Shown in pieces: positions 3,681-63,722 of a stretch of DNA of 64,000 bases (within the stretch, counting starts at the first letter, position 1; every line of letters begins with the position of its first letter). Both the position numbers and the translations under genes were made by a program. The notes beneath the pieces are model-generated. The model did not search any database, was not told the DNA's origin, and saw only the letters and a list, made by a program, of their open reading frames with translations. The stretch is from Podarcis erhardii (Eukaryota), in assembly GCA_964252035.1 (NCBI GenBank), contig OZ176201.1. The stretch is one strand, 5' to 3'.

Positions 3681-3802
3681 ATAGAGAGAGAGAGAAAAAG
3701 AGAGAGAGAGAGCACTAGCTAAATGTGCTAAACAAGCAGACTTTGTTTCAGTGCAATAGCCAAGGATGTTACTCAATTCCCACTTACCATTTGCTTCTAG
3801 TG

Positions 3803-4969
3803 ATGTTTAACCTGACAGAAGTGACCTTCCTCGGTGATGCCCACACTCGGTTCCAGACTCTAAAGCCTTGGTGGGATGTCCTGATGGACTACTTGGTAGT
3901 AGCGATGCTGATGGTCTCTCTCCTCTCAGGTACTCTGCTGATTTCTATTGACCATATGACCTGCTTGCCTCTGAATTACAAGCTAAATGAGACCACAGCA
4001 GCTATGCTCAAGCCTGGAGCTATGGACAGTGCCACCACCAGGGAAGAGTTTTCTACTGAGAACAGTGGACGCCCAATCAACCTTGACTACCAGCAGTACC
4101 TGTACATAAACCATGTCTGCTATCAGAATGCTTTGCCTTGGTTCTCCAAGTATTTTCCTTACCTAGCACTTGTCAACTCACTGATTTTAATGGCAAGCAG
4201 CAACTTCTGGTTCAGGTACCCTAAGACGTCCTCAAAGATCGAACACTTCTTATCCATCCTCATGAAATGCTTCGAGTCACCTTGGACCATCAAGGCCGTC
4301 TCTGAAATGGTCTGCCAGAATTCCCTAGACCTACCCAAAACCACGGATACTAGAGGGTGTCAAGAACAATTTATTTCCCCTTCATCCTCTCCTATCCTTG
4401 ACTGGAAGGAGAGGGAGCAGGGCCGGGCACTCTTTGAGAAGATCTGCAGATTCAGGGCACATGTTGAAGGTGCCAGCTTGATTTATATGGTCTACATGGG
4501 ACAAACAATCTTCAAAGTTGCCAAGATCCTAACTGTGCTGGGCTACACCTCCAACTGCATAGGAGCCATCTCCTTTGAACATGTTTGCTGGCTGGACACA
4601 GAGAACCTCACCGGCTACTCTGTTTTCCTCTGTAATCACAGCTTGGCTTTCATTCTGCAGAAGTTGATGGTGACCTACCTGTTCTTGGTATTCCTCTATG
4701 GGGTGGTGGGGGCTTACCCACTGGTGTGGCTGCTGCGGCAGCCGCTGCAGAAGTATTCCTTTAAGCAAATGCGAGAAGACAGTCACTTTCTTGGCATCCC
4801 AGATGTCTACAACGACTTTGCTTTCCTCCTGCACATGGCTGATCAGTGCGACCAACTATACTCCTGGCGGTTTGCCATCTTCCTCTCAGCCATGAGCAAG
4901 AGCTCTTTGCTGGATGTGGGCCTTGAACACAAGGCAAGTACTGAAGGGCTGCAGCTGCATGTGCATTGA
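3803..4969 (+). CDS. LRRC8-family volume-regulated anion channel subunit, LRRC8D-like paralogue; pannexin-like TM domain only, LRR domain lost (388 aa)
   Basis: Acceptor TTGCTTCTAG at 3800, ATG at 3803. MFNLTEV..LKPWWDVLMDYL, CYQNALPWFSKYFPYLAL, KCFESPW, AISFEHVC, DFAFLLHM and DQLYS.RF match LRRC8 motifs. The MF.L.EV start, CFESPW, AISFEHVC and DQ.DQLYS are D-type rather than A/C/E-type. The stop at 4967-4969 falls just before the LRRs. Confidence 0.9.
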   Translation: MFNLTEVTFLGDAHTRFQTLKPWWDVLMDYLVVAMLMVSLLSGTLLISIDHMTCLPLNYKLNETTAAMLKPGAMDSATTREEFSTENSGRPINLDYQQYLYINHVCYQNALPWFSKYFPYLALVNSLILMASSNFWFRYPKTSSKIEHFLSILMKCFESPWTIKAVSEMVCQNSLDLPKTTDTRGCQEQFISPSSSPILDWKEREQGRALFEKICRFRAHVEGASLIYMVYMGQTIFKVAKILTVLGYTSNCIGAISFEHVCWLDTENLTGYSVFLCNHSLAFILQKLMVTYLFLVFLYGVVGAYPLVWLLRQPLQKYSFKQMREDSHFLGIPDVYNDFAFLLHMADQCDQLYSWRFAIFLSAMSKSSLLDVGLEHKASTEGLQLHVH

Positions 4970-8611: not shown

Positions 8612-8969
8612 AGCATCTTCTAACAGCCCTCCGACCCGTCATGACTCCCAGACATGCTCCCTAGTCCCCATCAAAGCTGAGTGGAGATGCACGAATATTG
8701 GCGAGGAGAACGTCCAAAATATCATTGGCGGCGCTGATACTGAGCTCGGGCAGCGTTTTGGTGCCCTCGCGCATGCGCGAGCGGGGAAAAGCCGCGAGGC
8801 AAAACAAGCACAGCGGGCAAAAGTGAAGCCGTGCCTTTGCGGTGGGCGGAGGAGGAGGATGATAATATGGTGGCCTGGTTGGTCCTTTCGGCGCGTGCGC
8901 ACTGCGGTGTTTGTGTATTCTGGCTGCGCGGTGGCGGCAGCGTCGGCGGCTCCGGGGGAGGGGGGGAAG

Positions 8970-35766
<26,797 letters not shown>

Positions 35767-51937: not shown

Positions 51938-53134
51938 GTAAGTGTTCCTCTAGCATTCCCTCTCCACGTTCGGGAGCTTGGCTTGCTGGGAGGTGGAACA
52001 CGTCCTGGGAACTTTTAATTACAGCCAGTCTAATCCTGTAACACTGAATCTTGCTGTCTCAATGCATCCTTCTTTTTAAACAGAGCCATAAAGGTGGGAG
52101 GGAAGTTTTTGTGGGAAACTTGAGACAGGAGGGAAGAACGCCTTTTTGACTGACAGAAGTTGGGACCAGAAGGTGAGGGAGAGTAAGTTGCCTTCAGAGA
52201 AAGATTGCAGATCGAGTCTATAGAACTGAGAAGCAAGTGTTGGGCAAAATCCTTCTGGCTAGAGACAGATCATCACAGTGGATAATACTGAGCAAAGTGG
52301 ACCGATGATCTGGATTAGGCTCACACATCTTCCCATTTTCAAGGAGTAGAAGCCATTAGATAGTAAACAATTTGGAAGCAGGGTAAGCTCTGGGGTCCCC
52401 AATGTGTCACTCATGATCATCATAGTGCCCTCCTCTTGGTGCCAGCCAAGATCCCCTGATCCCATTTTTTTTTTTAAAGAAATTGAGGCTTTTTGTGATG
52501 AGGAGAGTGGGGTTTTTTTGCGGGGGAGACATTGCCTGCTTTTTGTGTCACTTTTATTTCTTTTGAGTGGGTAGGTGTTTAGTCTGGTTTCTGGGGATGA
52601 GGGAGGGGTGTCTGAGCATCACCCATTTTTCTTCAGTGAAATGGGTATTCTTAGATTTCTGACTATTTGCTCAGATTGAAAAGGTTGGAGACCCTGGCTA
52701 TATGCTATACCCTTTCACTTTGTGGTGTTAATTGGAAGGGTGGCCACCGCCTTCCCCTCTGCTTACAATTGCAGAAGCACCCACTGCACCAAAATGAAGT
52801 CCTTCCACCACCCCATCCTGCTATGATTGCGCATATGACAGGATAGTTGAAGGAATGTATAATCCGTATTAAGGGACACTGAGTATGGTCTGTATGCTTG
52901 TTTCTGTAGCAGATAGATCAGGAACGGAGAGAGGAAATGTTGAAGTTCTGTCCCAAAATCCGAACCACAAATTGACTGGTATGAGGTCTTGAGGGCTGGA
53001 AAGTGTTTCCAAGTAGCTCAGAGGTCGTGCAACGGCATTCCCTTCAACTCCTGTGCTTTCTTGCCCTGGCTTTGCTTTCTTTCCTAGGGTGGAACAAGAG
53101 GGAAATCACAGCTTTTCTTTGGGTTCTGAACACC

Positions 53135-53219
53135 ATGCATAGAAACTGCCTGCATATCGATCACCTATGGAGACAGTACCTCCTCCTGCTGCTTGTCGTC
53201 TGGGGGTGCTCTGGGACAG
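53135..53219 (+). CDS. TGFBR3L: TGFBR3L coding exon 1, signal peptide (exon starts 53088)
   Basis: CACCATGC Kozak context; MHRNCLHIDHLWRQYLLLLLVVWGCSGT; donor CAG|GTAAAG, phase 1. Confidence 0.75.
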
Positions 53220-56200
53220 GTAAAGTCTAAAAGAGTGGCTATTGTAAACATTTAAATGGGCTGCACAGTAATTATCCACACCAAAGGTGTAAAACATTTT
53301 GCTAAAACAAAACAAAACAAAAACATTATTGTAGGGGAGCTGTCCAGGATACATTGCTGTATGTATCCTGAAGTGTACATGTAAAAAAGAAATTAGCAGT
53401 CTTAAAATACATTTTTCTTTGCAACCTTGAATGTAGAGCAGGTCTTTCAACTTTGCTAAATAGACATGTGTGCGCTCACACAGAGCCATTTGGACTTGTC
53501 AAATTTTCTTCCCTTGCAGCAGAATAGGTAGATGAAGTTGTCAGAGTATAAATGTATTCAATGGGGTTTTATACTAGGGGTTTGAGGGACGTGGGTGGTG
53601 CTGTGGTCTAAACCACTGAGCCTCTTGAGCTTGCCGATCACAAGATTGGCAGTTCAAATTCACACAATGGGGTGAGCTCCCATTGCTCTGTTCCGGCTCC
53701 TGTCAACCTAGCAGTTCGAAAGCATGCCAGTGCAAGTAGATAAATAGGTACTGGTGCGGCGGGAAGGTAAACGGTGTTTCCATGTGCTCTGGTTTCTGTC
53801 ACAGTGTTCCATTGTGCCAGAAACAGTTTAGTCATGCTGGTCACATGACACAGAAAAGCTGTCTGCGGACAAATGCCAGTTCCCTCAGCCTGAAAGCAGA
53901 GATGAGCGCTGCACCCCAAAGTCAAATTCGACTGGATTTAACCATTCATGGGTCCTTTACCTTTACCTTACTAGGGGTTTCCCAATTCTGCATGATGCTT
54001 CTGATGCCCTTTGTCCTGCTTCTCTTTATTGGATGTACCTTCAGTGAGCAGCTTGGATTTACAGAGTGTCCTTCATTCTGTACCTGCTTATTTTTCACAG
54101 GATGCAATTTCAGTTCCTTGATAACCAAGTACACACAGCTAAGGGCACTTTTAATCTCCAGCTCGGCACTCAGTATTTGTTTTTGACATTGATTACCATA
54201 GGGCAGGTAGATGCTGCCTGTGGGTTGTTTATAGCACAGAGGCTGTTAAGCTATCTGCTGAATTCATAGCCAGCCGACCATGGTAGCTTCCTATAAAGAG
54301 AAGAGCCCAGGCTTCCAAAGTTGACCAGGAGTCATAGTTTCTGTTCTGAATGGTGAGGGGAAGGCACTCTGCACTTGCTGTAAGGTACTTCTGCTATTTC
54401 TTCACATTCCCAAATTGGGGGGAAAACATCCACGTTGAACACTCCTGCAGCTGTACTTTGGTATCTGGTACAGCTCTCTGTGGGACGTGGGTGGCGCTGT
54501 GGGTTAAACCACAGAGCCTAGGACTTACCGATCTGAAGGTTGGCAGTTCAAATCCCTGCAACGGGGTGGCTCCCGTTGCTCGGTTCCTGCTCCTGCCAAC
54601 CTAGCAGTTCGAAAGCACGTCAAAGTGCAAGTAGATAAATAGGTACCGCTCTGGCGGGAAGGTAAATTGCGTTTCCATGCGCTGCTCTGGTTCGCCAGAA
54701 GCGGCTTAGTCATGCTGGCCACATGACCCAGAAGCTGTATGCCGGCTCCCTTGGCCAATAAAGCGAGATGAGAGCCGCAACCCCAGAGTCCGCCACGACT
54801 GGACCTAATGGTCAGGGGTCCCTTTACCTTTACCTTTACAGCTCTCTATTCCTTTCTCATGGTGCCAGAGCATATTCTTTCACATGGAATGTTAAGGCAG
54901 ATTGAGTTGGTAGAATCCTCATGTGCTAAATGGAATTGTACCATTTCAGGCTGCAGATGGTGTGTGTGTGTGTGTCTTTTTTAAACCCCTCCCCCCTAAA
55001 GCTGTCTATGTGTAAAATTCCAGTACACTGAGGAGAAAGAATTAGCTCCCTGGGGCAACTTAATAACTCTGCCCGGAAGCATAGGCAGAAACGAGAGAGC
55101 CCAGGCCAGGCAGCTCCTGAGATCGCCCTGAGAATATTCGGTAGCTTTTGTTCCTTCCAGTATTTTAAATTGAAAATTGCCTTGGTAGAAAGGCAACAAA
55201 CCAGCCCAGCCTGCTCCCTACTGTGTTAGCTTTCCTATTACAAGGAACTTTTTACATTGTAGTCTCAGAATAGTATATAGTCTGGTCTGCCACCACATTC
55301 TCACCCAGTCTTATTGTTGTGTATGTAATGTGTAGCCACCGTGCAGGGCTAGCAGCTTCCCTGTAATTATTTAATTCGTAAAATGAATGGTCAGTGGTTA
55401 GAGCACCTGCTTTGCATGAAGTAGGTCCCAGCTTCATTTCCCAGCATCTTCAGGTAGGACTGAGGTTATCCCTAGAGAACTGCAGCCGGTCAGTGCAAAA
55501 GACAATACTCTCATCTTCATAATGAAAACAGACTTTAAATAATAATTCTCTTTAATAGGGTTGAGTGCCAAACATGACCACTGAAAAACAAGAGGAGTGC
55601 CATCAACATGCCCAGGAGAAATGGGGGGGGATGGAACTAAGAGGGAGGAACCCCCCCCAAAAAAACACCACTTTCCCACCCAGCAAAGGCTCTCCATGCT
55701 GAGTATCCTTTGGAAAAGGAATTTAAAGGGAAGGAGGAGACTGAGCCCCTTACAGTTTAAAGTATCTTGGTGGAGGGAAAGGATAGCTGACTGAAAAAGA
55801 AACACTTTTTTCCCTTGTACAACTTGTACAATCTAAAAATAAGCCAGTAAGCCATTGTTAGGAGCAATTCACAGTGACCCTCCCCCCTCAGTGTGGGGAC
55901 CATGAAATGCACACCAATCCATTTCTGTCCCATCATACCAGTTCCCCCAGAGTTTCCTTGTTTTATTTTTCCCTCCATCATCCTCAGTCATTGGCCAGAT
56001 ATTCCATATTTTTTGTTTCTCAGACACAGAATGAATTATGCAAAAAAGAAAAGAAAAAAAAGTTAAGCTGGTGTATCATTTTGAGCTCAGGCACCTGAGC
56101 ACTTTGTGTTTTGGGAGAAAGGGGATGCCAAATGTACAGAGTTTTGGAAACTACTTTTCTGAAACCCCGTTTCTTCCAGCATTGCTCTTCTCCTTCCCCT

Positions 56201-59200
56201 GCAGCCGCCAGGCACCATCTTGCTTGCCTCCCCATGTCTGCCTCTACCCCACATCCCGTCCTCGGCTTCTGGGAATCACTGCGAAAAGGCACCGGATGCA
56301 CCAGCCGGGGCCGCTCTACCCTGGGACAAGAAGTCCATGTCATCAGCCTGAAGAAGGGATTGCCGGCAAATGGCCAGGTATGAGAGATCCCCATCCATAC
56401 CACCTTCCCATGTATGAGGCTGTATGATGGGTCTTGCTACAGCTCCATTGGATACCCAAACAAGATGGCCGCTCAGCTTGGCACTACAGTTCAAGGTGTC
56501 TCAGTCAGTCAAAAAGGCAAAACTCCATTTCAGTCACTTCTTCACAGTTGTCAGGGCCTCTCTTAAGTCACAGAAGCGTTAGGTTAGCCAAGTTGTGAGA
56601 AGCAAAGAGGAACACTCTTGCGCAGGGCCTGCTTAGTGCTGGGGGTGGGAACATGCCTCACCTGCTGAACATCCAAGGCGGCCGCCTTTGGTGGTATATC
56701 CTACCTTCTCTGGTTCTTTTCCAATCCCTTCTCCATTTCGCTCTTTGATCATGCATGGAGAAGGTACCTGTCCCCTTGATCCTCTTTCAGGTAACTCTGA
56801 TAACTCTGGACCCAGATCCCCACGACAGAGGCCCCATCTTTGTGCTGTATTCCCAAAAGCCTGTGCGCTGGGTGTTGCTGTCTCCCCCTGGAAAAAACTG
56901 GACCTTCCAGGTGAGATGGGATAGAGGGCCAAAGGGCCTAGAGAACATCATGGGGATCACTGAGGGGGTCGTTGGAGCCCCTGCTCTACGCAAGCATAGA
57001 AGATGAGTGGCAGCAATGGGAAGGGTGGATGGAAAAGCTAATTTGCTACCTCCACAGCACTTTTACAAAATACTTTCAGATCTAGCTCTGTTTGTCTTCA
57101 GAAGCATCTTGTGTAGTAAGTTCCTATTCTTCCCATTTTACAGATGGGGGAAATTGAGGCTATGGGAGGCTTGCCTAAGGCCACCCAGTGAATCTGTGGC
57201 TGAAGTGGAATTTAAACCCAGATCTCCCAGATTAAAGTGCAGAACTGTTCTAGTTTAATGCCCTCCCCAGCGTGGGGTGTCAGAGAGGGGGGAGGTTCTC
57301 CAGGCTAGTATATTTTACCTTTGCCTTCCTCCTATCTACAGGTCTCCCCTGGCTCTAATGTTTCAGCCCCGGGGCCAGTGGCCTCTGCTGAGACCAACTT
57401 ACCAAAGACGCCCAAACGCCTGCTGAAGTGGGCACGGAGGGAGCACGGAGGGGTCACCTCTCTGGCTGAATACCGTGGAGTCAACAGAATCTACACACGC
57501 CTGGGGGCTGGCATGGGCAATGAGGGTAGATATCGGCTCTGAGGGAAAGGGTGGCATTATGGCTGTGTGTCCTACAATTCCCCATCCCTGACCACTGGCC
57601 ACCCTGGCTGGGGCTGATTGGAGTTGCAGTCCAGCAACATATGGAGAGACACAGGTTCCCCATTTTCGCTACTGCAGTGTGATAAGCAGGAGGAGGGCAG
57701 GCAGCTGGTCTTTTGGGTCCTGGGCTAATGCAGTAACTTTGCAGAAGTTGTGCAGGTCTGGGTCTGGTCAGTGCTTGGAAGGGAGACCATCCAGGAAGGA
57801 AAGATCTGTGCACTGCAATCATAGAGGGAAGATGGAATATATACACAGCACAGATAAATAAGACTCACCAGTATCAACTGGAGAGCAGTTGCCAAAGAGT
57901 TTGCATTGCTTGCAAAAGAAGAAGAGTAAATCGCAGCAGCTCTTCTGTGACCATTCAGTCCAGATGCTTCATTCCTTTCCTTCTCCAGATAGGATTGCCC
58001 CAGCCACTTGCAGATTAAGTAGGAATTTCCTGACCCCAGTGCACTTTGCCTCCAAGTGCCAACTCCAGCCTCTGAGAGTTTGCCTGCATCCTGACCCTCC
58101 GCAAGTCCTTGAAGTTCACATCATCCTCTCCAAAGGAGTTGCACCAAGGTGCGTGCCAGGGAGGCATCGCCAGATGCGGCTGCTGAACCGGGGGGGGGGG
58201 GGAGCAGGGGGTTGGCAAAATGTTCATAACGAGATGCCGTGTCTTGAACAGGGAGGTTGAAATTGTTCTTAGTGTAGATGGGGAAGGGGGATGGTGAGGA
58301 AGAATGAAACCTATGCAAGAAGCTGTCTATGATAAGTGACCCTTGTGTTGAAATGGATAAGATGTAATAAACAGGAACATGGAAGCTGGTTCATCTAGCC
58401 TGGTACTGCTGACACAGACTGGCAGCAGATCTCCCATGTCTTTCTCAGCTCTGTCTGGAGATGATGGGGATCGAATCTCTGACCTTCTGCATGCAGAGCA
58501 GTTGCCCTGCCACTTAGCTACGGCACTTCCCCCGAAAGTCAAGGCCAGATGGACACTGAGCCAAAAACGAGTAGCGACAGTGGCTAGTATTAGGCCTTGA
58601 ATATTGGGCAGGGATCTCTGAGTTGGGGGACGGGTGGCGTGGGGCTTCACTGGCTTCCATCATGTGCTTAATCCTGTTGTGGGGGGGCAGCCTGCTCTCT
58701 TCTAGGCCCACCCTGGCTCATTTGACCGTGGAACTTCATGCTGTCCGAAGGCCCCCCCACTGGGGACTGATCTTGATACTGAAGAGTGAGGGAGCTGCTG
58801 AGTGGATGGTTCACACCCACCGCCTCACTGGCCGGCTGCATGTACTGGTAGGGGCAGGACCTGCTCTGGGTATAGATCTGTAACGCTCTAGGCCAGCTAA
58901 TACTCTTCTCTCTCTCTCCCCCTCCCCAAGTTGGTGGCAGTGGCACACATCTGGAAGGGAGCAGGGCACACATGTGCTCAAAGCCAGACACAGTGGTACT
59001 TCAGGTTACAGACGCTTCAGGTTACAGACTCTTCAGGTTCCAGACTCCGCTAACCCAGAAATAGTACCTCAGGTTAAGAACTTTGCTTCAGGATGAGAAC
59101 AGAAATCATGCGATGGCGGCGTGGCGGCAGTGGGAGGCCCCATTAGCTAAAATGGTACCTCAGGTTAAGAACAGTTTCAGGTTAAGAACGGACCTCCGGA

Positions 59201-62200
59201 ACGAATTAAGTTCTTAACCTGAGGTACCCCTGTATAGCCAAGTGTGTCATCAACATCAGTACAAAACTGGGTGGGATTTATTCCTTAATTAACCTGAGGT
59301 ACCACTGTAGATGCATTATGCAGAATTGTAACCTTTCCTAGTGGAAGCAGTTTGGTTGGCTTCATGCTATTATAAGGGTTATATTATGGAGGGTTCATTC
59401 TGCTAACTCCTGCCTTCACAGGCCCACTAGTGAGCTTTACCAACCCTCTTCCATAAGCTTCCCCTGCATTCTCCCTATAACTCTAGGTTTGCCTCCTCCT
59501 CCTCCAGCCTTATTTTTTTTTTGCTAAAGTGAGCCAAGGAGTCTTACTTCCTGGCTCCAACTCTCCACCCCACTAGGCTACTCCCTCTTGGGAGTCTGTC
59601 TCCATGCTGCCATTTGATTCCCTTGGACCGTCTCTTGTTTATGGTGTGCCTGTTGCTGCTGCTCTCCATGTCTGGGCCTTGTATTGTAACTCAGGCTGGG
59701 ATTCCTTTCTAGGCTTCGCACAAAGTCACAGTCAGCAGCACAGAAATGGATCTGCCTCTGACTGTGACCCAGCGGACGTCCCCTCGGCTGATGACCCTCG
59801 ACCCTTTGCAGTTTGCAACGGAGCAGAATCTGCCTGCCTTTACATCCTACGTTGAGGCTGAGCGGGTGAACAGGTTTCTCCTTTTTGTTGGGACGAATGG
59901 TAGGTTTGGAGGGATTCAATGGACATGAATGGGAAAAGTGCCCACCAGAGAGCTTAGAGGCAAACCACTAGTGACCGCTGCAGTAGATTCCTGGCATTTA
60001 TATTCCAGTTCCTCCTGCACCATTTTACCCTAGGGTATACAACCTCAGTTTTATTTTAGGAATGCACCAAATCAAAACATTTTCAGCATGAAAAGTATGC
60101 TTCCAAGGGGGCTGAAATGATACACACCCAGCCAAAGCATATATTTTGGTGCTTGTTAACATATTTTGCTGCTTCAGTGCCATTTTCCCAAACCCTTTTG
60201 AGAGCTTATTTCCTAGTCGTTATGTGATCCCAGCCAATCAGGATTCACGTAGGGATGATAAATGGTGTCAAATAAGCAATCAGCTGTGGCTACAATGGTA
60301 AAATCAAGAAGGGCAAATGAAACTGCATTGCATTCTGAATGCTGAGCCCGTGGAAGAGAACAGGAAGGCGTGCCATATTATGTCAGAATGTGCAGACCTT
60401 TCACTTAGGTAACAGAAGGAATAGATACAGGGTTGCCAACATTCTTGGGCCCATGGGTAAGTCTGCAACAGAGAAATTATTGTGAGTCCCCTCCCCTCCT
60501 CTCCTGCAAACTATTCTATGGGCTCCAATAGAATGCTTCTTCTGAGCCTAATTTCAGTGCTGGGAGGGGAGGCTAGCTTGCAGACTGCAGAGAAGGCCTC
60601 TGTGAGCTGGGCACATGTGTCCTTTGGGGCCACACTGGTGATGCTTGGAAGAGATCATATTCTGATTAACAGCAGCAGTGTATAAGGCATATGATTGCAT
60701 CACACCCACACACCTGTATTTCCTTTGTAGGGGCCACACCTCCTCTAGAAGAGCCAACACTCTTTTGGCCCGTATTTCTGCATCCTCCCAGTTTCACAGC
60801 CTCTCAACAGGACTTTGCAGAAGCCAACACAGCTGGCTGGGAGGTGACAAGGCAGGACTTTGGGGGAGAGGATGGTTCCGTTACCTACCCACCGTCTACA
60901 GCCAAAGCAGAGGGGACAGAATCTATCTTGTGTCTTGGGGACCATAAGCCTGTTCTTGAAAACCAGGACACTCAGAGAGTGAGTAGCCAAGGATGGCATC
61001 TCCAGATGGACAGAGGGAATCTATTTCCTACAGTGCCATTTCATGTGGGTGTGGATGGGTGGGTATTGTCTTGCCGTTGTACATCAATACCGCTCCACAG
61101 ACCTGTTTTTCTCCTGCAGGTCTCCTGTGTTTCACCTTCTCCAACCCAGATATCTCCCTCAGAAGCCGCAACGGCCTTCCAGGATCCCCACCTTCACCTT
61201 GGCAATGCCCTCATTAACCTAGAGCTCTACAACACAGAGGCTTTTGCCAAGCAACTTGGACCTTTTGTCGTCTCAGCCAACAGCCTTGTCTTTGTGGAGG
61301 TAAAGCGGACGATGAATATACAAGAGCTGGCATTGGACGCAGCAGTTACACGCCAGAATCTTGTCCCTAAGTGATTCCTCCTCTGTCCAGAGATCTGGTG
61401 GTTTGCAGCACTCCCTGTCTCTCTCAGAGCCTCAAACAGGGCAGTTGACCTGCTTGTTGCTTTATGGGGGGGTGATAAACTTACACTGTAGCTCTCAAAG
61501 GGACGAAGTAACAGGGGTGATTTGCCATCACGTTTTACCAGCTTAGAAGGGCAACGTGCATCCCAGGGAAGGTCATGATTTTGTAAGCAAAACAGCAAGG
61601 AATAGACTTAGCAGATTTCATACTGCGGCCCAATTCAAGGTCCAACTTTATGGTTGGTTGGCAATGAAAAAATAGGTATAAAAAGACAATTCCTGGATGC
61701 CAAGAGCCAAGTTTGGGGCAAGTATTCTTTGGTGAGAGAACCCCAGCAGAAATTTAAAACAACAAACATCTAGCAAAGAAAAGCATGGAAATATAGGTTG
61801 TTATTCTTAGAATATGTCTTTCTAAGTTCCTTCCAAAATTCCCCTCTTCTCCTGGCACAGAAAATACCATGTGTGTGGCAAGTTCAAAATGGTTTACTTA
61901 CAGACTCTCCAATGATCAGATTCATGTGCTTTTCAGTGCAGCATTCAGAAAACGTTGGCAGCAAAACTGGCAGTTGTCTTTGCAGATGGTGTTTCCTTTT
62001 TCCTCCAGGCTTCCTTGGCAACCTATGACTCGTCTCTCAGCTTCACCATCCAGAAGTGCTTCATCTCTAGCTCCTCAGATGCTTCAGAGGCCTCAGTGTA
62101 TCTCCTGGTCCAGCATGGCTGTCCTGTGGCCGCCGCCCAAGTCAGGCTGTGGAAACCTGAGCTGCCAGGCCAGGCCCAGGCGTTGCCTCTGGGGTACCAG

Positions 62201-63722
62201 GAACGCCAGCGACTGAGCTTTGTGTTGAAGCCACAGTCCAATGCCTCCATCCACTTCTTGCACTGCCATCTGACGCTCTGCAGCAGGGGGTCTCAGGACT
62301 CCGTCAGACCCAAGGGCGCAATCCCCAAGGTCTCTGGCTCCCTGGGCTAGGGAACCCTGTCTTCTAGCAGCTATCTGAGGGCCTGATAGCGCTACTGCTT
62401 CAGAATAGGCTCTCCTGATTGGGGATGCTTATGGAGGAAACTGATATGCCACTGCAAGCTCTCCACTTGGCCCAGAGGTAGCCAAAATGGTGCCCTCTGC
62501 TCAATGAGGATGCTGGCTTCCCAATTCCCAGCACCTCAGCTAGCATGGCCATTGGCCAGGGGTGATGAAAATTGTAGTCAATTGGTATCTAGGGGGGGCA
62601 CCATGTTGGTTACCCCTTAGCTTATTATTATTGCCTCCTCTGAACAGCAATATCTCTCAAGTGTTTCAAGCAGAGGTCTTTCCTTTGATGTTTGACTGGG
62701 GGTTGAATGGGGGCCCCTCTGTGTGCTTTGCCCCTCAGCTATGACTGGCCCCTTCCAGAAATCCTTGGACCATCTCTGCTCTGAGGGTGGAAGGGGTGGT
62801 GCCTAAGAAAAGATGGAATAAAGAGGAAAGCGAAACCCCTTGGAGGGGTGAAAACCCTCTGGAATGGGTCTGTGCAAAAGAGCCCCCCAGTTAGCTGTAG
62901 AAATGAGCTGGCTGGGCTTATGGAGAAGCAGGTGGGATATAACTGGGCCAAGGCCTACCTCCCACTGTTGGGATGAGGCACTCTTCTGAGGCAGGTTTTT
63001 GTTTCAGTGTCAGTCTGAGAAGGAGGCCTGCAGGGGAGAAGAGGAGGCGGTCCCAAGCCGCTTCCAGCGCACCATCACAAAGCCTATGCTAGTGACTGTG
63101 GAGACTCCGCTCCGAGCTGCCTCTCCTGGCCCAAAACCAGGTACTTTCCTGTGGGTTCTAGATAGCAGCCAGGAGAGAGCAGTTGGCTTGAAGGCCTTGC
63201 AGTTCAGCACCCTGGCTCCATGCTGGAGAAAACTGTCCTGCAGAGTGAGTGAGGAACTGAAAGAAACTGATGGGGGAGTCCTGCTTGCTGGGGAGATGGA
63301 AGTGTCTCCTTGTGCATCTCTCCAGAGCAGAGGTGGTGGACCTGTAGCCCTCTAGATATTCTTGGACTCCAGCTCCCATCACCTCAAGCCATCATGGCCA
63401 ATGGCAAGGGATAATGGGGCTTGTAGTTCACCAGCATCTCCTACCCAGGAGATTGATGCCTTGGATCTCACCATGCTACAAGCCCAGACTTTGCCAATGG
63501 CATGTTCATCCTGAGTGAAGCAAAGTAGCAATGATGGGCAGTTATGCACTCATTTCTTTTCTCCCCCTTGCCACCCGGAGGCTATTTTCTTCAGACACTC
63601 CCTCAGATTATCTGTTCCTTCCTTGACTTTGGTGTCTTTTTCTGCAGCTAAGGTCCCAGACAAACAACAAGGAAAAGCACCAAAGGATGCAGCCCACAAG
63701 CGGAAGACTCAGGTAGTCCGAA
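53135..63722 (+). CDS. TGFBR3L: TGF-beta receptor type 3-like protein (betaglycan paralogue), first 12 coding exons (~669 aa); TM and cytoplasmic exons lie beyond the window
   Basis: Twelve phase-compatible exons colinear with TGFBR3 exons. ZP-C motifs GPFVVSANSLVFVEASLA, NASIHFLHCHLTLC, CQSEKEAC and TITKPMLVTV are closer to mammalian TGFBR3L than to TGFBR3 as recalled. Position directly downstream of MAP2K7 matches TGFBR3L. Confidence 0.85.
53586..53971 (+). mobile_element. Sauria SINE (full length, older subfamily)
   Basis: GGGACGTGGGTGGTGCTGTGGTCTAAACC head, (CCTTTA)n tail, 12-bp TSD TACTAGGGGTTT (53572-53583 / 53969-53980). Confidence 0.92.
54482..54838 (+). mobile_element. Sauria SINE (full length, lacertid-type)
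   Basis: GGGACGTGGGTGGCGCTGTGGGTTAAACC head with A/B boxes, GGGGTCCCTTTACCTTTACCTTTAC tail, 11-bp TSD TACAGCTCTCT (54469-54479 / 54837-54847). Confidence 0.95.
56205..56377 (+). CDS. TGFBR3L: TGFBR3L coding exon 2 (orphan domain)
   Basis: AARHHLACLPMSASTPHPVLGFWESLRKGTGCTSRGRSTLGQEVHVISL..., matching TGFBR3 LCELSPVSASHPV..SGCASRG..QEVHVLNL. Confidence 0.9.
56791..56910 (+). CDS. TGFBR3L: TGFBR3L coding exon 3 (orphan domain)
   Basis: VTLITLDPDPHDRGPIFVLYSQKPVRWVLLSPPGKNWTFQ, matching TGFBR3 VTLHL..VVFLLNSPHPLVW; phase 0-0. Confidence 0.85.
57055..57240 (-). mobile_element. MIR-like SINE
   Basis: CCCATTTTACAGATGGGGGAAATTGAGGCT...TTGCCTAAGGCCACCCAG, the inverted MIR core. Confidence 0.65.
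57342..57525 (+). CDS. TGFBR3L: TGFBR3L coding exon 4 (orphan domain); alternative GC donor would end it at 57510
   Basis: VSPGSNV...LLKWARREHGGVTSLAEYRGVNRIYTRLG, matching TGFBR3 VSEGSVV...LLNWARKEYGAVTSFTELKIARNIYIKVG. Confidence 0.85.
57989..58148 (+). CDS. TGFBR3L: TGFBR3L coding exon 5 (orphan domain)
   Basis: DRIAPATCRLSRNFLTPVHFASKCQLQPLRVC...EVHIIL, matching TGFBR3 DQVFPPKCNIGKNFLSLNY...GC...EVHIIEL. Confidence 0.9.
58706..58847 (+). CDS. TGFBR3L: TGFBR3L coding exon 6 (orphan domain)
   Basis: PTLAHLTVELHAVRRPPHWGLILILKSEGAAEWMVHTHRLTGRLHVL, matching TGFBR3 NLILILKCKKSVNWVIKSFDVKGSLKII. Confidence 0.88.
58991..59232. mobile_element. Tigger/pogo-like MITE
   Basis: TIR CAGTGGTACTTCAGGTTA / TTAACCTGAGGTACCCCTG followed by TA; internal CTTCAGGTTACAGAC repeats; extra right TIR at ~59289-59307. 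Confidence 0.8.
59713..59899 (+). CDS. TGFBR3L: TGFBR3L coding exon 7 (end of orphan domain)
   Basis: ASHKVTVSS...FTSYVEAERVNRFLLFVGTN, matching TGFBR3 APNSIGF...ITSYTMAPVANRFHLRL; phase 0-1. Confidence 0.85.
60731..60978 (+). CDS. TGFBR3L: TGFBR3L coding exon 8 (linker plus first ZP-N strand)
   Basis: Phase-1 acceptor TTTGTAG; GATPPLEEP...ESILCLGDHKPVLENQDTQR; donor AGA|GTGAGT, phase 0. Confidence 0.7.
61120..61299 (+). CDS. TGFBR3L: TGFBR3L coding exon 9 (start of ZP-C)
   Basis: VSC...GNALINLELYNTEAFAKQLGPFVVSANSLVFVE, matching TGFBR3 FNC...GNITFNMELYNTDLF...VYVE. Confidence 0.9.
62009..62329 (+). CDS. TGFBR3L: TGFBR3L coding exon 10 (ZP-C core)
   Basis: ASLATYDSSLSFTIQKCFIS...HGCP...LSFVLKPQSNASIHFLHCHLTLC...IPK; donor AAG|GTCTCT is weak. 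Confidence 0.88.
62472..62618. mobile_element. Short hAT-type palindromic MITE
   Basis: CAGAGGTAGCCAAAATGGTGCCC ... GGGCACCATGTTGGTTACCCC inverted termini. Confidence 0.6.
63008..63140 (+). CDS. TGFBR3L: TGFBR3L coding exon 11 (end of ZP-C / external hydrophobic patch)
   Basis: CQSEKEACRG...RTITKPMLVTVETP; donor CAG|GTACTT, phase 1. Confidence 0.88.
63648..63722 (+). CDS. TGFBR3L: TGFBR3L coding exon 12 (75 nt, juxtamembrane, phase 1-1)
   Basis: TTTTTCTGCAG acceptor; AKVPDKQQGKAPKDAAHKRKTQVVR; donor A|GTAAGT at 63723. Confidence 0.6.

Follow-up and report, generated by a model that had tools for sequence, protein, structure and literature searches.

We describe a gene in a 64,000-nucleotide stretch of the Podarcis erhardii genome (GenBank assembly GCA_964252035.1, contig OZ176201.1; henceforth the window, meaning the whole stretch) that is very probably the lacertid ortholog of TGFBR3L, i.e. 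the third member of the betaglycan (TGFBR3)/endoglin (ENG) family, whose members are type III co-receptors for TGF-beta, composed of a signal peptide, an orphan domain, a linker, the C-terminal zona pellucida (ZP) subdomain (ZP-C), a stalk, a transmembrane (TM) segment and a tail, and devoid of the N-terminal ZP subdomain (ZP-N). Exons 2-7 encode an orphan domain homologous to that of betaglycan over its full length and, among squamates and a turtle, these exons are under purifying selection and as constrained as ZP-C. Mammalian TGFBR3L (roughly 295 aa; 297 aa in mouse and 292 aa in human) consists of a signal peptide, ZP-C, a TM segment and a short tail; by comparison, the lizard gene has about 405 additional residues in front of ZP-C, made up of a 322-aa orphan domain and an 83-aa linker.

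The seven consecutive plus-strand exons that the sequence-only reading of the window had proposed are present within 53135-59899, where they are bounded by AG acceptors and GT donors, have end phases 1,0,0,1,2,0,1 and join into a single open frame of 350 aa, in which a signal peptide precedes an orphan domain that is of betaglycan type and complete. Exons 8-12 (60731-63722) continue in phase from the orphan exons and encode the linker, ZP-C and the stalk. That orphan and ZP-C exons probably belong to one product is suggested both by the frame in the window and by RefSeq-type gene models of about 30 squamates and turtles that make the same join. Among them is an independent model from Podarcis muralis (P0033), which shares 95% identity with the conceptual protein of the 12 exons (671 aligned positions); in this model, as in other orthologs, a TM segment and a short tail follow. 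Two alternatives to the exon set were noted. A possible 5' exon further upstream contains an in-frame ATG and ends in a GT donor; if joined to the acceptor at 53088 (53088-53134), it would place 44 aa before the MHRNC methionine; this addition occurs in Podarcis and Zootoca models, while eight other squamate models begin at an MHRNC-type methionine. An alternative in-frame acceptor at 58691, located 15 nt 5' of exon 6 (58691-58705), would insert SLLSS and is the one used in Podarcis, Elgaria and Rhineura models.

The lizard N-terminus (MHRNC...LLLLLVVWGCSG followed by T) is a predicted signal peptide, judged from its positively charged n-region, a hydrophobic core of 9-10 residues (LLLLLVVW) and a GCSG/T junction with small residues at -3 and -1. 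The sequence-only reading had further held that mammalian TGFBR3L has no signal peptide, which is mistaken: mouse TGFBR3L (297 aa, with a single ZP domain) has one, and its absence from the human protein was an outdated database model, corrected in the same study (PMC8673766). As a side observation, the rhinoceros (Diceros bicornis, L001 10001-10270) model in GenBank and isoform X3 of the gibbon both begin with MGES..., in an open reading frame (ORF) that runs into the first ZP-C exon and has no signal peptide, a computational first exon of the sort that PMC8673766 corrected for human; the bat UniProt entry has a signal-peptide exon.

Both orphan subdomains were recovered in alignments, as had been read from the letters of the window: the alignment of the Podarcis ortholog with the rat betaglycan orphan construct (339 residues) covers residues 9-329 of the construct (E 2.9e-31), and the human and zebrafish betaglycan orphan domains are matched with E 1e-29 and E 2-4e-28, respectively. 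The corresponding scores (112/107/102 bits) place mammalian and fish betaglycan at about equal distance from the lizard domain. Among solved structures, exon 4 by itself matched orphan domains of betaglycan at E 2e-7 and endoglin at E 0.03. The four cysteines (C36, C60, C195 and C219, in the contexts LAC, TGC, ATC and RVC) align with those of betaglycan and show no variation across 13 reptile sequences or in the eel protein discussed below, and a reptile orphan-domain profile matches every orphan exon of the window (E 1e-17 to 1e-31). The orphan domain (Pfam PF26060, TGFBR3_N) is also precomputed for the orthologs; a Pfam scan of single window exons gave no orphan match, the Pfam copy used being without PF26060 and the exons only 40-60 aa long. 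An exhaustive protein search with exon 4 returned reptile proteins only, apart from low-complexity false matches; a skate protein (P0008) and ENA repeats (P0009/P0018), considered as exon 4 homologs, were discarded as such.

An AlphaFold2 (AF2) model of the Podarcis ortholog, built on 34 homologs, had a mean predicted local distance difference test (pLDDT) score of 58, with values of 70-90 in the orphan blocks, about 25 in the linker and 80-90 in ZP-C. Its top Foldseek matches were betaglycan orphan domains (E 4.5e-17 to 1e-13, probability 1.0, about 340 columns, with template modelling scores of only 0.40-0.44), so that the structural check suggested with the sequence-only reading came out in favour of the domain assignment; betaglycan ZP-C was matched with template modelling scores of 0.79-0.85 and the endoglin orphan domain with E 1e-9. 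At the sequence level the ZP-C of the Podarcis ortholog matches betaglycan ZP-C in the PDB with E of about 1e-22 to 1e-23. When the AF2 model was compared with reviewed UniProt models, human and mouse TGFBR3L aligned to its ZP-C part only, starting from their residues 1-8.

Selection was estimated on orthologs from Tiliqua, Elgaria, Heteronotia, Candoia and Terrapene, whose proteins were mapped to their loci and whose codons were threaded on a MAFFT alignment; a maximum likelihood (ML) estimate of omega (the ratio of nonsynonymous to synonymous substitution rates, dN/dS) under GY+F3X4 was tested against omega=1 by twice the log-likelihood difference (2dlnL). For the orphan exons, pairwise dN/dS among squamates was 0.14-0.28 and ML omega 0.30, and neutrality was rejected at a 2dlnL of 223. 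ZP-C gave nearly the same picture (pairwise 0.17-0.38, ML omega 0.28, 2dlnL 153), and the linker exon 8 had the highest values (pairwise 0.31-0.75, ML omega 0.66, 2dlnL 5.4). The dN/dS comparison, also proposed with the sequence-only reading, thus returned purifying selection on the orphan exons.

These estimates bear directly on the question whether the orphan exons are decaying or skipped, with a short mammal-like ZP-C receptor as the working lizard product. Exons 2-7, at 966 nt in total, form a phase 1-1 symmetric cassette, hence their skipping would keep the frame, and the database models of some turtles are indeed shorter. Against this stand the omega of the orphan exons, their intact splice sites and frame (in the window, in four other squamates and in a turtle), the invariance of the four cysteines and their inclusion in about 30 independent gene models. 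We therefore regard a skipped or decaying orphan cassette as very improbable indeed, and retain a lizard protein that includes the orphan domain.

The assignment to TGFBR3L is founded on position and on similarity. The lizard gene starts (53135) 17 kb downstream of MAP2K7 and lies on the same strand; the C-terminal exon of this MAP2K7 matches MAP2K7 in the PDB (E 5e-22) and is 93% identical to the last MAP2K7 exon of the rhinoceros. In the rhinoceros contig the order is MAP2K7, TGFBR3L (3.4 kb later), SNAPC2 and TIMM44, a caecilian has a ZP-N+ZP-C gene of TGFBR3L type downstream of a kinase gene that lies on the same strand, and several turtle models are MAP2K7 read-through fusions with the TGFBR3L-type gene. 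By phmmer, with scores compared at a common database size, bat TGFBR3L reached 102 bits with the caecilian, 74 with the lizard and 72 with the turtle gene (a range of 70-102 when the tuatara is included), versus 47, 44 and 43 bits with human, mouse and rat TGFBR3. Moreover, the lizard orphan domain is only 25-28% identical to those of rat and zebrafish betaglycan, which share 55.4% with each other (PMC11865472); an identity so far below that between true orthologs argues that the lizard gene is not betaglycan itself.

A number of observations weigh against the reading of this gene as a TGFBR3L ortholog of ancient, originally long form, and we set them out together. The TM and tail exons lie beyond the end of the 64-kb window. 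Logan proteins matching exon 4, considered as transcript evidence, had to be rejected, as they are genomic single-exon ORFs running into introns and not cDNA. The AF2 model is moderately confident, with low-confidence loops, and its orphan part is only loosely superposable on solved structures (by the template modelling scores given above). In the reverse direction of the similarity comparison, lizard ZP-C scores higher with human TGFBR3 (87 bits) than with bat TGFBR3L (68 bits), so the similarity argument works from the mammalian side only. An ML tree of ZP-C, with fish endoglin as outgroup and without bona fide TGFBR3, left its base unresolved: the approximately unbiased (AU) test gave p 0.20 for all TGFBR3L-type genes as one clade and p 0.14 for reptile genes together with an eel gene named 'TGFBR3', rejecting neither. 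That eel gene (Electrophorus electricus, P0080), taken up as a TGFBR3 outgroup, was dismissed from this role, as the equidistance of its orphan domain and its ZP-region scores indicate that it is not the zebrafish tgfbr3 ortholog. Finally, a caecilian gene model has a signal peptide, an exon-8-like linker, ZP-N and ZP-C and is without an orphan domain (which is known from the model alone), and an ancestral long form would consequently require at least two independent losses.

Three word-indexed homolog searches returned no bona fide TGFBR3 and, since the tree is without one, orthology rests on synteny and the one-sided similarity and not on the tree. The one-sidedness itself fits a fast-evolving mammalian TGFBR3L, whose branch in the tree is very long and compositionally odd. 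It is in this light that we weighed whether the lizard gene could be TGFBR3 itself, or a recent sauropsid duplicate of it, instead of a TGFBR3L ortholog. The higher score of lizard ZP-C with human TGFBR3, the reptile + 'TGFBR3' clade left standing by the AU test and the NCBI names of several of the proteins ('TGFBR3' or 'TGFBR3-like') are in keeping with such an origin. The gene, however, sits at the TGFBR3L locus beside MAP2K7, lacks ZP-N, has an orphan domain about equidistant from mammalian and fish betaglycan and far less similar to either than these are to each other, and belongs to a family to which mammalian TGFBR3L is much closer than to TGFBR3; the official NCBI name of the Varanus, Carettochelys, Chrysemys and Alligator members is, furthermore, TGFBR3L. 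A betaglycan identity is thus scarcely credible, and we keep to TGFBR3L.

The eel gene named TGFBR3 by NCBI deserves separate mention. It has 16 coding exons, its orphan domain is equidistant from human (143 bits) and zebrafish (137 bits) betaglycan, and its ZP region scores 117 bits with each of the turtle and caecilian genes and about 72 bits with human TGFBR3. The motifs SIQFLHC and RDPSCxAQSNG are common to the eel gene and the TGFBR3L-type genes. Judged by these sequence comparisons, it may be a teleost TGFBR3L. A catfish genome paper lists a tgfbr3l beside mcoln1 (PMC12003874). Downstream of the eel gene, on the opposite strand, lies a gene for a C2H2 zinc-finger protein of roughly 300 aa, as is likewise the case at the caecilian locus.

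Exon phases allow the modules of the family to be followed across vertebrates. The turtle ortholog, which contains all four subdomains including ZP-N, has 16 coding exons with end phases 1,0,0,1,2,0,1,0,0,0,0,0,1,1,1,0, a number and a phase series that are the same in the eel gene (itself probably not a true TGFBR3), and the seven window exons have the phases of both. Squamate exons, those of the window included, match the turtle phases except that a pair of phase 0-0 exons, which encode ZP-N in the turtle (162 and 90 nt), is missing; no counterpart of them was found between lizard exons 8 and 9 (60979-61119), in other squamates or in a tuatara fragment; this fragment runs from the C-terminal end of the orphan domain through the linker into ZP-C. 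In agreement, Pfam ZP-N is present in the turtle, eel and caecilian proteins and has no match in the P. muralis model. Hence, while the sequence-only reading took the lizard gene for an ancestral third full-size co-receptor, the ancestral long form is well supported (the turtle has four subdomains, and the mammalian locus no relics), and the full-size part is not, because both ZP-N exons are missing from the lizard.

The reptile orphan profile, which as a positive control matches all orphan exons of the window and of the turtle locus (E 1e-10 to 1e-31), found no relics in a 22-kb rhinoceros locus (best E 0.19; with two small N gaps in the spacer) and, for the alligator gene, no orphan exon within 10 kb upstream (best E 0.88). 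In the alligator (Alligator mississippiensis, L002 9137-9680), the DNA immediately upstream of the annotated TGFBR3L start matches ZP-N exons (E 3e-11 with the turtle protein), so that the 5' end of the model is probably missing. The homolog searches yielded no bird ortholog. The absence of orphan relics from the rhinoceros locus, with the other support, makes an ancestral long TGFBR3L with secondary loss in mammals the simplest history, which we consider well supported and which upholds the earlier suggestion that mammals deleted the orphan half.

The converse history would have the short form as ancestral and the orphan domain as a reptile gain, by capture of the orphan exons of TGFBR3. Such a gain is in line with a caecilian model and mammals that both lack the orphan domain and with the empty 10 kb upstream of the alligator gene. 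A recent copy would sit poorly with the degree of divergence, as identity to betaglycan-type sequences is no higher for the reptile orphan domain (about 32% with the eel paralogue and 25-28% with rat and zebrafish) than for ZP-C (26-40%); nor does it lean towards either fish or mammalian betaglycan, from which it is equidistant. The 16 exon phases that the turtle gene and the eel paralogue have in common are, in addition, those expected from whole-gene duplication, and a teleost tgfbr3l is annotated in the catfish genome (PMC12003874). Capture of betaglycan exons is, in our judgement, very unlikely.

We reason that the ancestral TGFBR3L would have been full-length and probably an ancient paralogue of TGFBR3 and ENG, and that phase-symmetric exon modules may have been lost from it in separate events. 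Lepidosaurs would have lost ZP-N (0-0), a caecilian the orphan cassette (1-1), and mammals the two together. TGFBR3 (1p22), ENG (9q34) and TGFBR3L (19p13) lie, as do EVI5/EVI5L and GFI1/GFI1B, in the classical 1/9/19 paralogy regions, an arrangement that would fit the vertebrate genome duplications.

Whether the lizard orphan domain could bind TGF-beta in the manner of betaglycan can be approached through known contacts. Structures of the betaglycan orphan domain with TGF-beta point to a binding loop PNSSSAFQ (244-251), F250, D253, the residues L208/L210/L213 of orphan subdomain 2 (OD2) and F49, and alanine mutation of F250 or D253 abolishes binding (PMC11865472). In sequence alignment, the loop of the main TGFBR3L isoform is 5 residues shorter than that of betaglycan, and it is within the equivalent of this loop that the optional SLLSS would be inserted. 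At the position of F250, TGFBR3L has T, G, S or R; Q251 is replaced by L, D253 by H, L213 by F, F49 by L or I, and L210 by P or S (with L in one turtle), and L208 is kept. The segment found there instead, LAHLTVELHA, ranks with the best conserved parts of the orphan domain in TGFBR3L (conservation of 0.91 versus a domain mean of 0.76). With the loop and the essential residues replaced, betaglycan-style TGF-beta binding by the lizard orphan domain is unlikely, and we infer a domain that is functional without binding TGF-beta in the way betaglycan does.

Our functional scheme is accordingly a conditional one. The protein would be a membrane co-receptor that captures ligands belonging to the TGF-beta family, its ZP-C would be the module to which inhibin binds, as it is in mammals, while the orphan domain may provide a second, selected module for binding or scaffolding. 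Inhibin B binding and gonadotrope expression of TGFBR3L are known only for mouse and human (PMC8673766). A wider proposal, to which we give somewhat less than even chances, is that TGFBR3L is a third type III co-receptor of ancient origin that had its full length, with orphan, ZP-N and ZP-C parts, in vertebrates from fish to turtles, in which the orphan domain would be a ligand-binding module unlike that of betaglycan (not for TGF-beta1-3, perhaps for an inhibin/activin-class or other family ligand), which would act as a two-site co-receptor in non-mammals, and from which mammals, the caecilian and lepidosaurs would each have dropped different modules through phase-symmetric exon deletion.

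Set beside the known members of the family, the lizard gene is like mammalian TGFBR3L in its position directly downstream of MAP2K7 on the same strand, in a homologous ZP-C with an S[IV]QFLHC motif and in being a type I membrane protein that starts with a signal peptide. The mammalian protein evolves fast and is rich in proline and alanine. With betaglycan it has in common whole-length orphan homology (E 3e-31), the same four cysteines and a homologous ZP-C, and it differs from betaglycan in its locus, in the low identity of the orphan domain and in the lack of ZP-N; without ZP-N, it has none of the glycosaminoglycan (GAG) attachment region that is located in the ZP-N of betaglycan. Endoglin has the same layout of orphan and ZP modules and gives weak sequence and fold matches (exon 4 E 0.03; Foldseek E 1e-9), but is much more distant than betaglycan, and the tails of the orthologs are unlike the ...SSMA ends of the fish endoglins compared here. 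Turtle TGFBR3L-type genes (e.g. Terrapene XP_029769740, 822 aa) are orthologous, with identical exon phases and with identities of 52% in the orphan domain and 48% in ZP-C; turtles keep two ZP-N exons (Pfam ZP-N E 9e-7) that squamates and the tuatara lack.

The features of the window, together with the turtle ZP-N exons used for comparison, are listed in the table. Intron 1 of the lizard gene holds, by eye only, two similar copies resembling tRNA-derived short interspersed elements (SINEs), at about 53578-53960 and 54478-54840.

Table. Features of the Podarcis erhardii window and, in the last two rows, of the turtle locus (L007); coordinates are positions in the respective stretch.
Feature	Coordinates	Strand	Details
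Exon 1: start codon and predicted signal peptide	53135..53219	+	85 nt, end phase 1; hydrophobic core conserved in squamates and turtles; AF2 helix at residues 6-24
Exon 2: start of orphan domain, Cys1 (LAC) and Cys2 (TGC)	56205..56377	+	173 nt, end phase 0; profile E 7e-29
Exon 3: orphan domain	56791..56910	+	120 nt, end phase 0; profile E 5e-17
Exon 4: orphan domain, most conserved segment LLKWARREHGGVTSLAEY	57342..57525	+	184 nt, end phase 1; PDB betaglycan orphan E 2e-7; profile E 4e-31
Exon 5: orphan domain, Cys3 (ATC), Cys4 (RVC), equivalent of betaglycan OD2 contact loop	57989..58148	+	160 nt, end phase 2
Exon 6: orphan domain, begins inside equivalent of betaglycan TGF-beta binding loop	58706..58847	+	142 nt, end phase 0
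Exon 7: end of orphan domain, ...TSYVEAERVNRFLL	59713..59899	+	187 nt, end phase 1; profile E 4e-30
Exon 8: linker, poorly conserved, predicted disordered	60731..60978	+	248 nt, phase 1 to 0; omega 0.66; pLDDT about 25; no ZP-N match
Exon 9: first ZP-C exon, equivalent to turtle exon 11	61120..61299	+	180 nt, phase 0-0
Exon 10: ZP-C core including SIHFLHC	62009..62329	+	321 nt, phase 0-0; Pfam Zona_pellucida E 1.2e-8
Exon 11: end of ZP-C and start of stalk	63008..63140	+	133 nt, end phase 1
Exon 12: juxtamembrane stalk	63648..63722	+	75 nt, GTAAGT donor; same length as the 75-nt exon of Tiliqua and Elgaria
Possible upstream 5' exon: in-frame ATG, GT donor	52894..52978	+	spliced to acceptor 53088 (53088-53134), adds 44 aa before the MHRNC Met
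MAP2K7, synteny anchor	8823..35763	+	first coding exon within ORF 8823-9500; last coding exon ends at about 35763
LRRC8-type pannexin-like ORF, second synteny anchor upstream of MAP2K7	3725..4969	+	long single ORF; match to the pannexin-like TM region of LRRC8 (Pfam Pannexin_like E 4e-111)
Turtle ZP-N exon (L007)	15124-15285		phase 0-0
Turtle ZP-N exon (L007)	16279-16368		phase 0-0

Automated RefSeq and UniProt models already combine TGFBR3_N with ZP-C in about 30 squamates (and with ZP-N as well in turtles), and what is new here is therefore the interpretation and not the sequence; the searchable literature on TGFBR3L contained no discussion of non-mammalian TGFBR3L or of an orphan domain in TGFBR3L. 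Taken as a whole, the interpretation put forward in the sequence-only reading is partly supported, and the observation beneath it is confirmed.

In the literature TGFBR3L figures as a short, ZP-C-only, inhibin-B-specific co-receptor of mammalian gonadotropes, and the papers found treat it solely as a homolog of betaglycan ZP-C. The presence of a selected orphan domain at the same locus in lizards, snakes, the tuatara and turtles indicates instead that the mammalian protein is the trimmed remnant of a third full-length type III receptor. The family thereby offers a natural domain-deletion series (the turtle with all four subdomains, lepidosaurs without ZP-N, the caecilian without the orphan domain and mammals with neither) with which one could examine the contribution of each module, the origin of selectivity between inhibin A and B, and whether the orphan domain has its own ligand; as the betaglycan contact residues are replaced by a different conserved sequence, this last question becomes a concrete and testable one.

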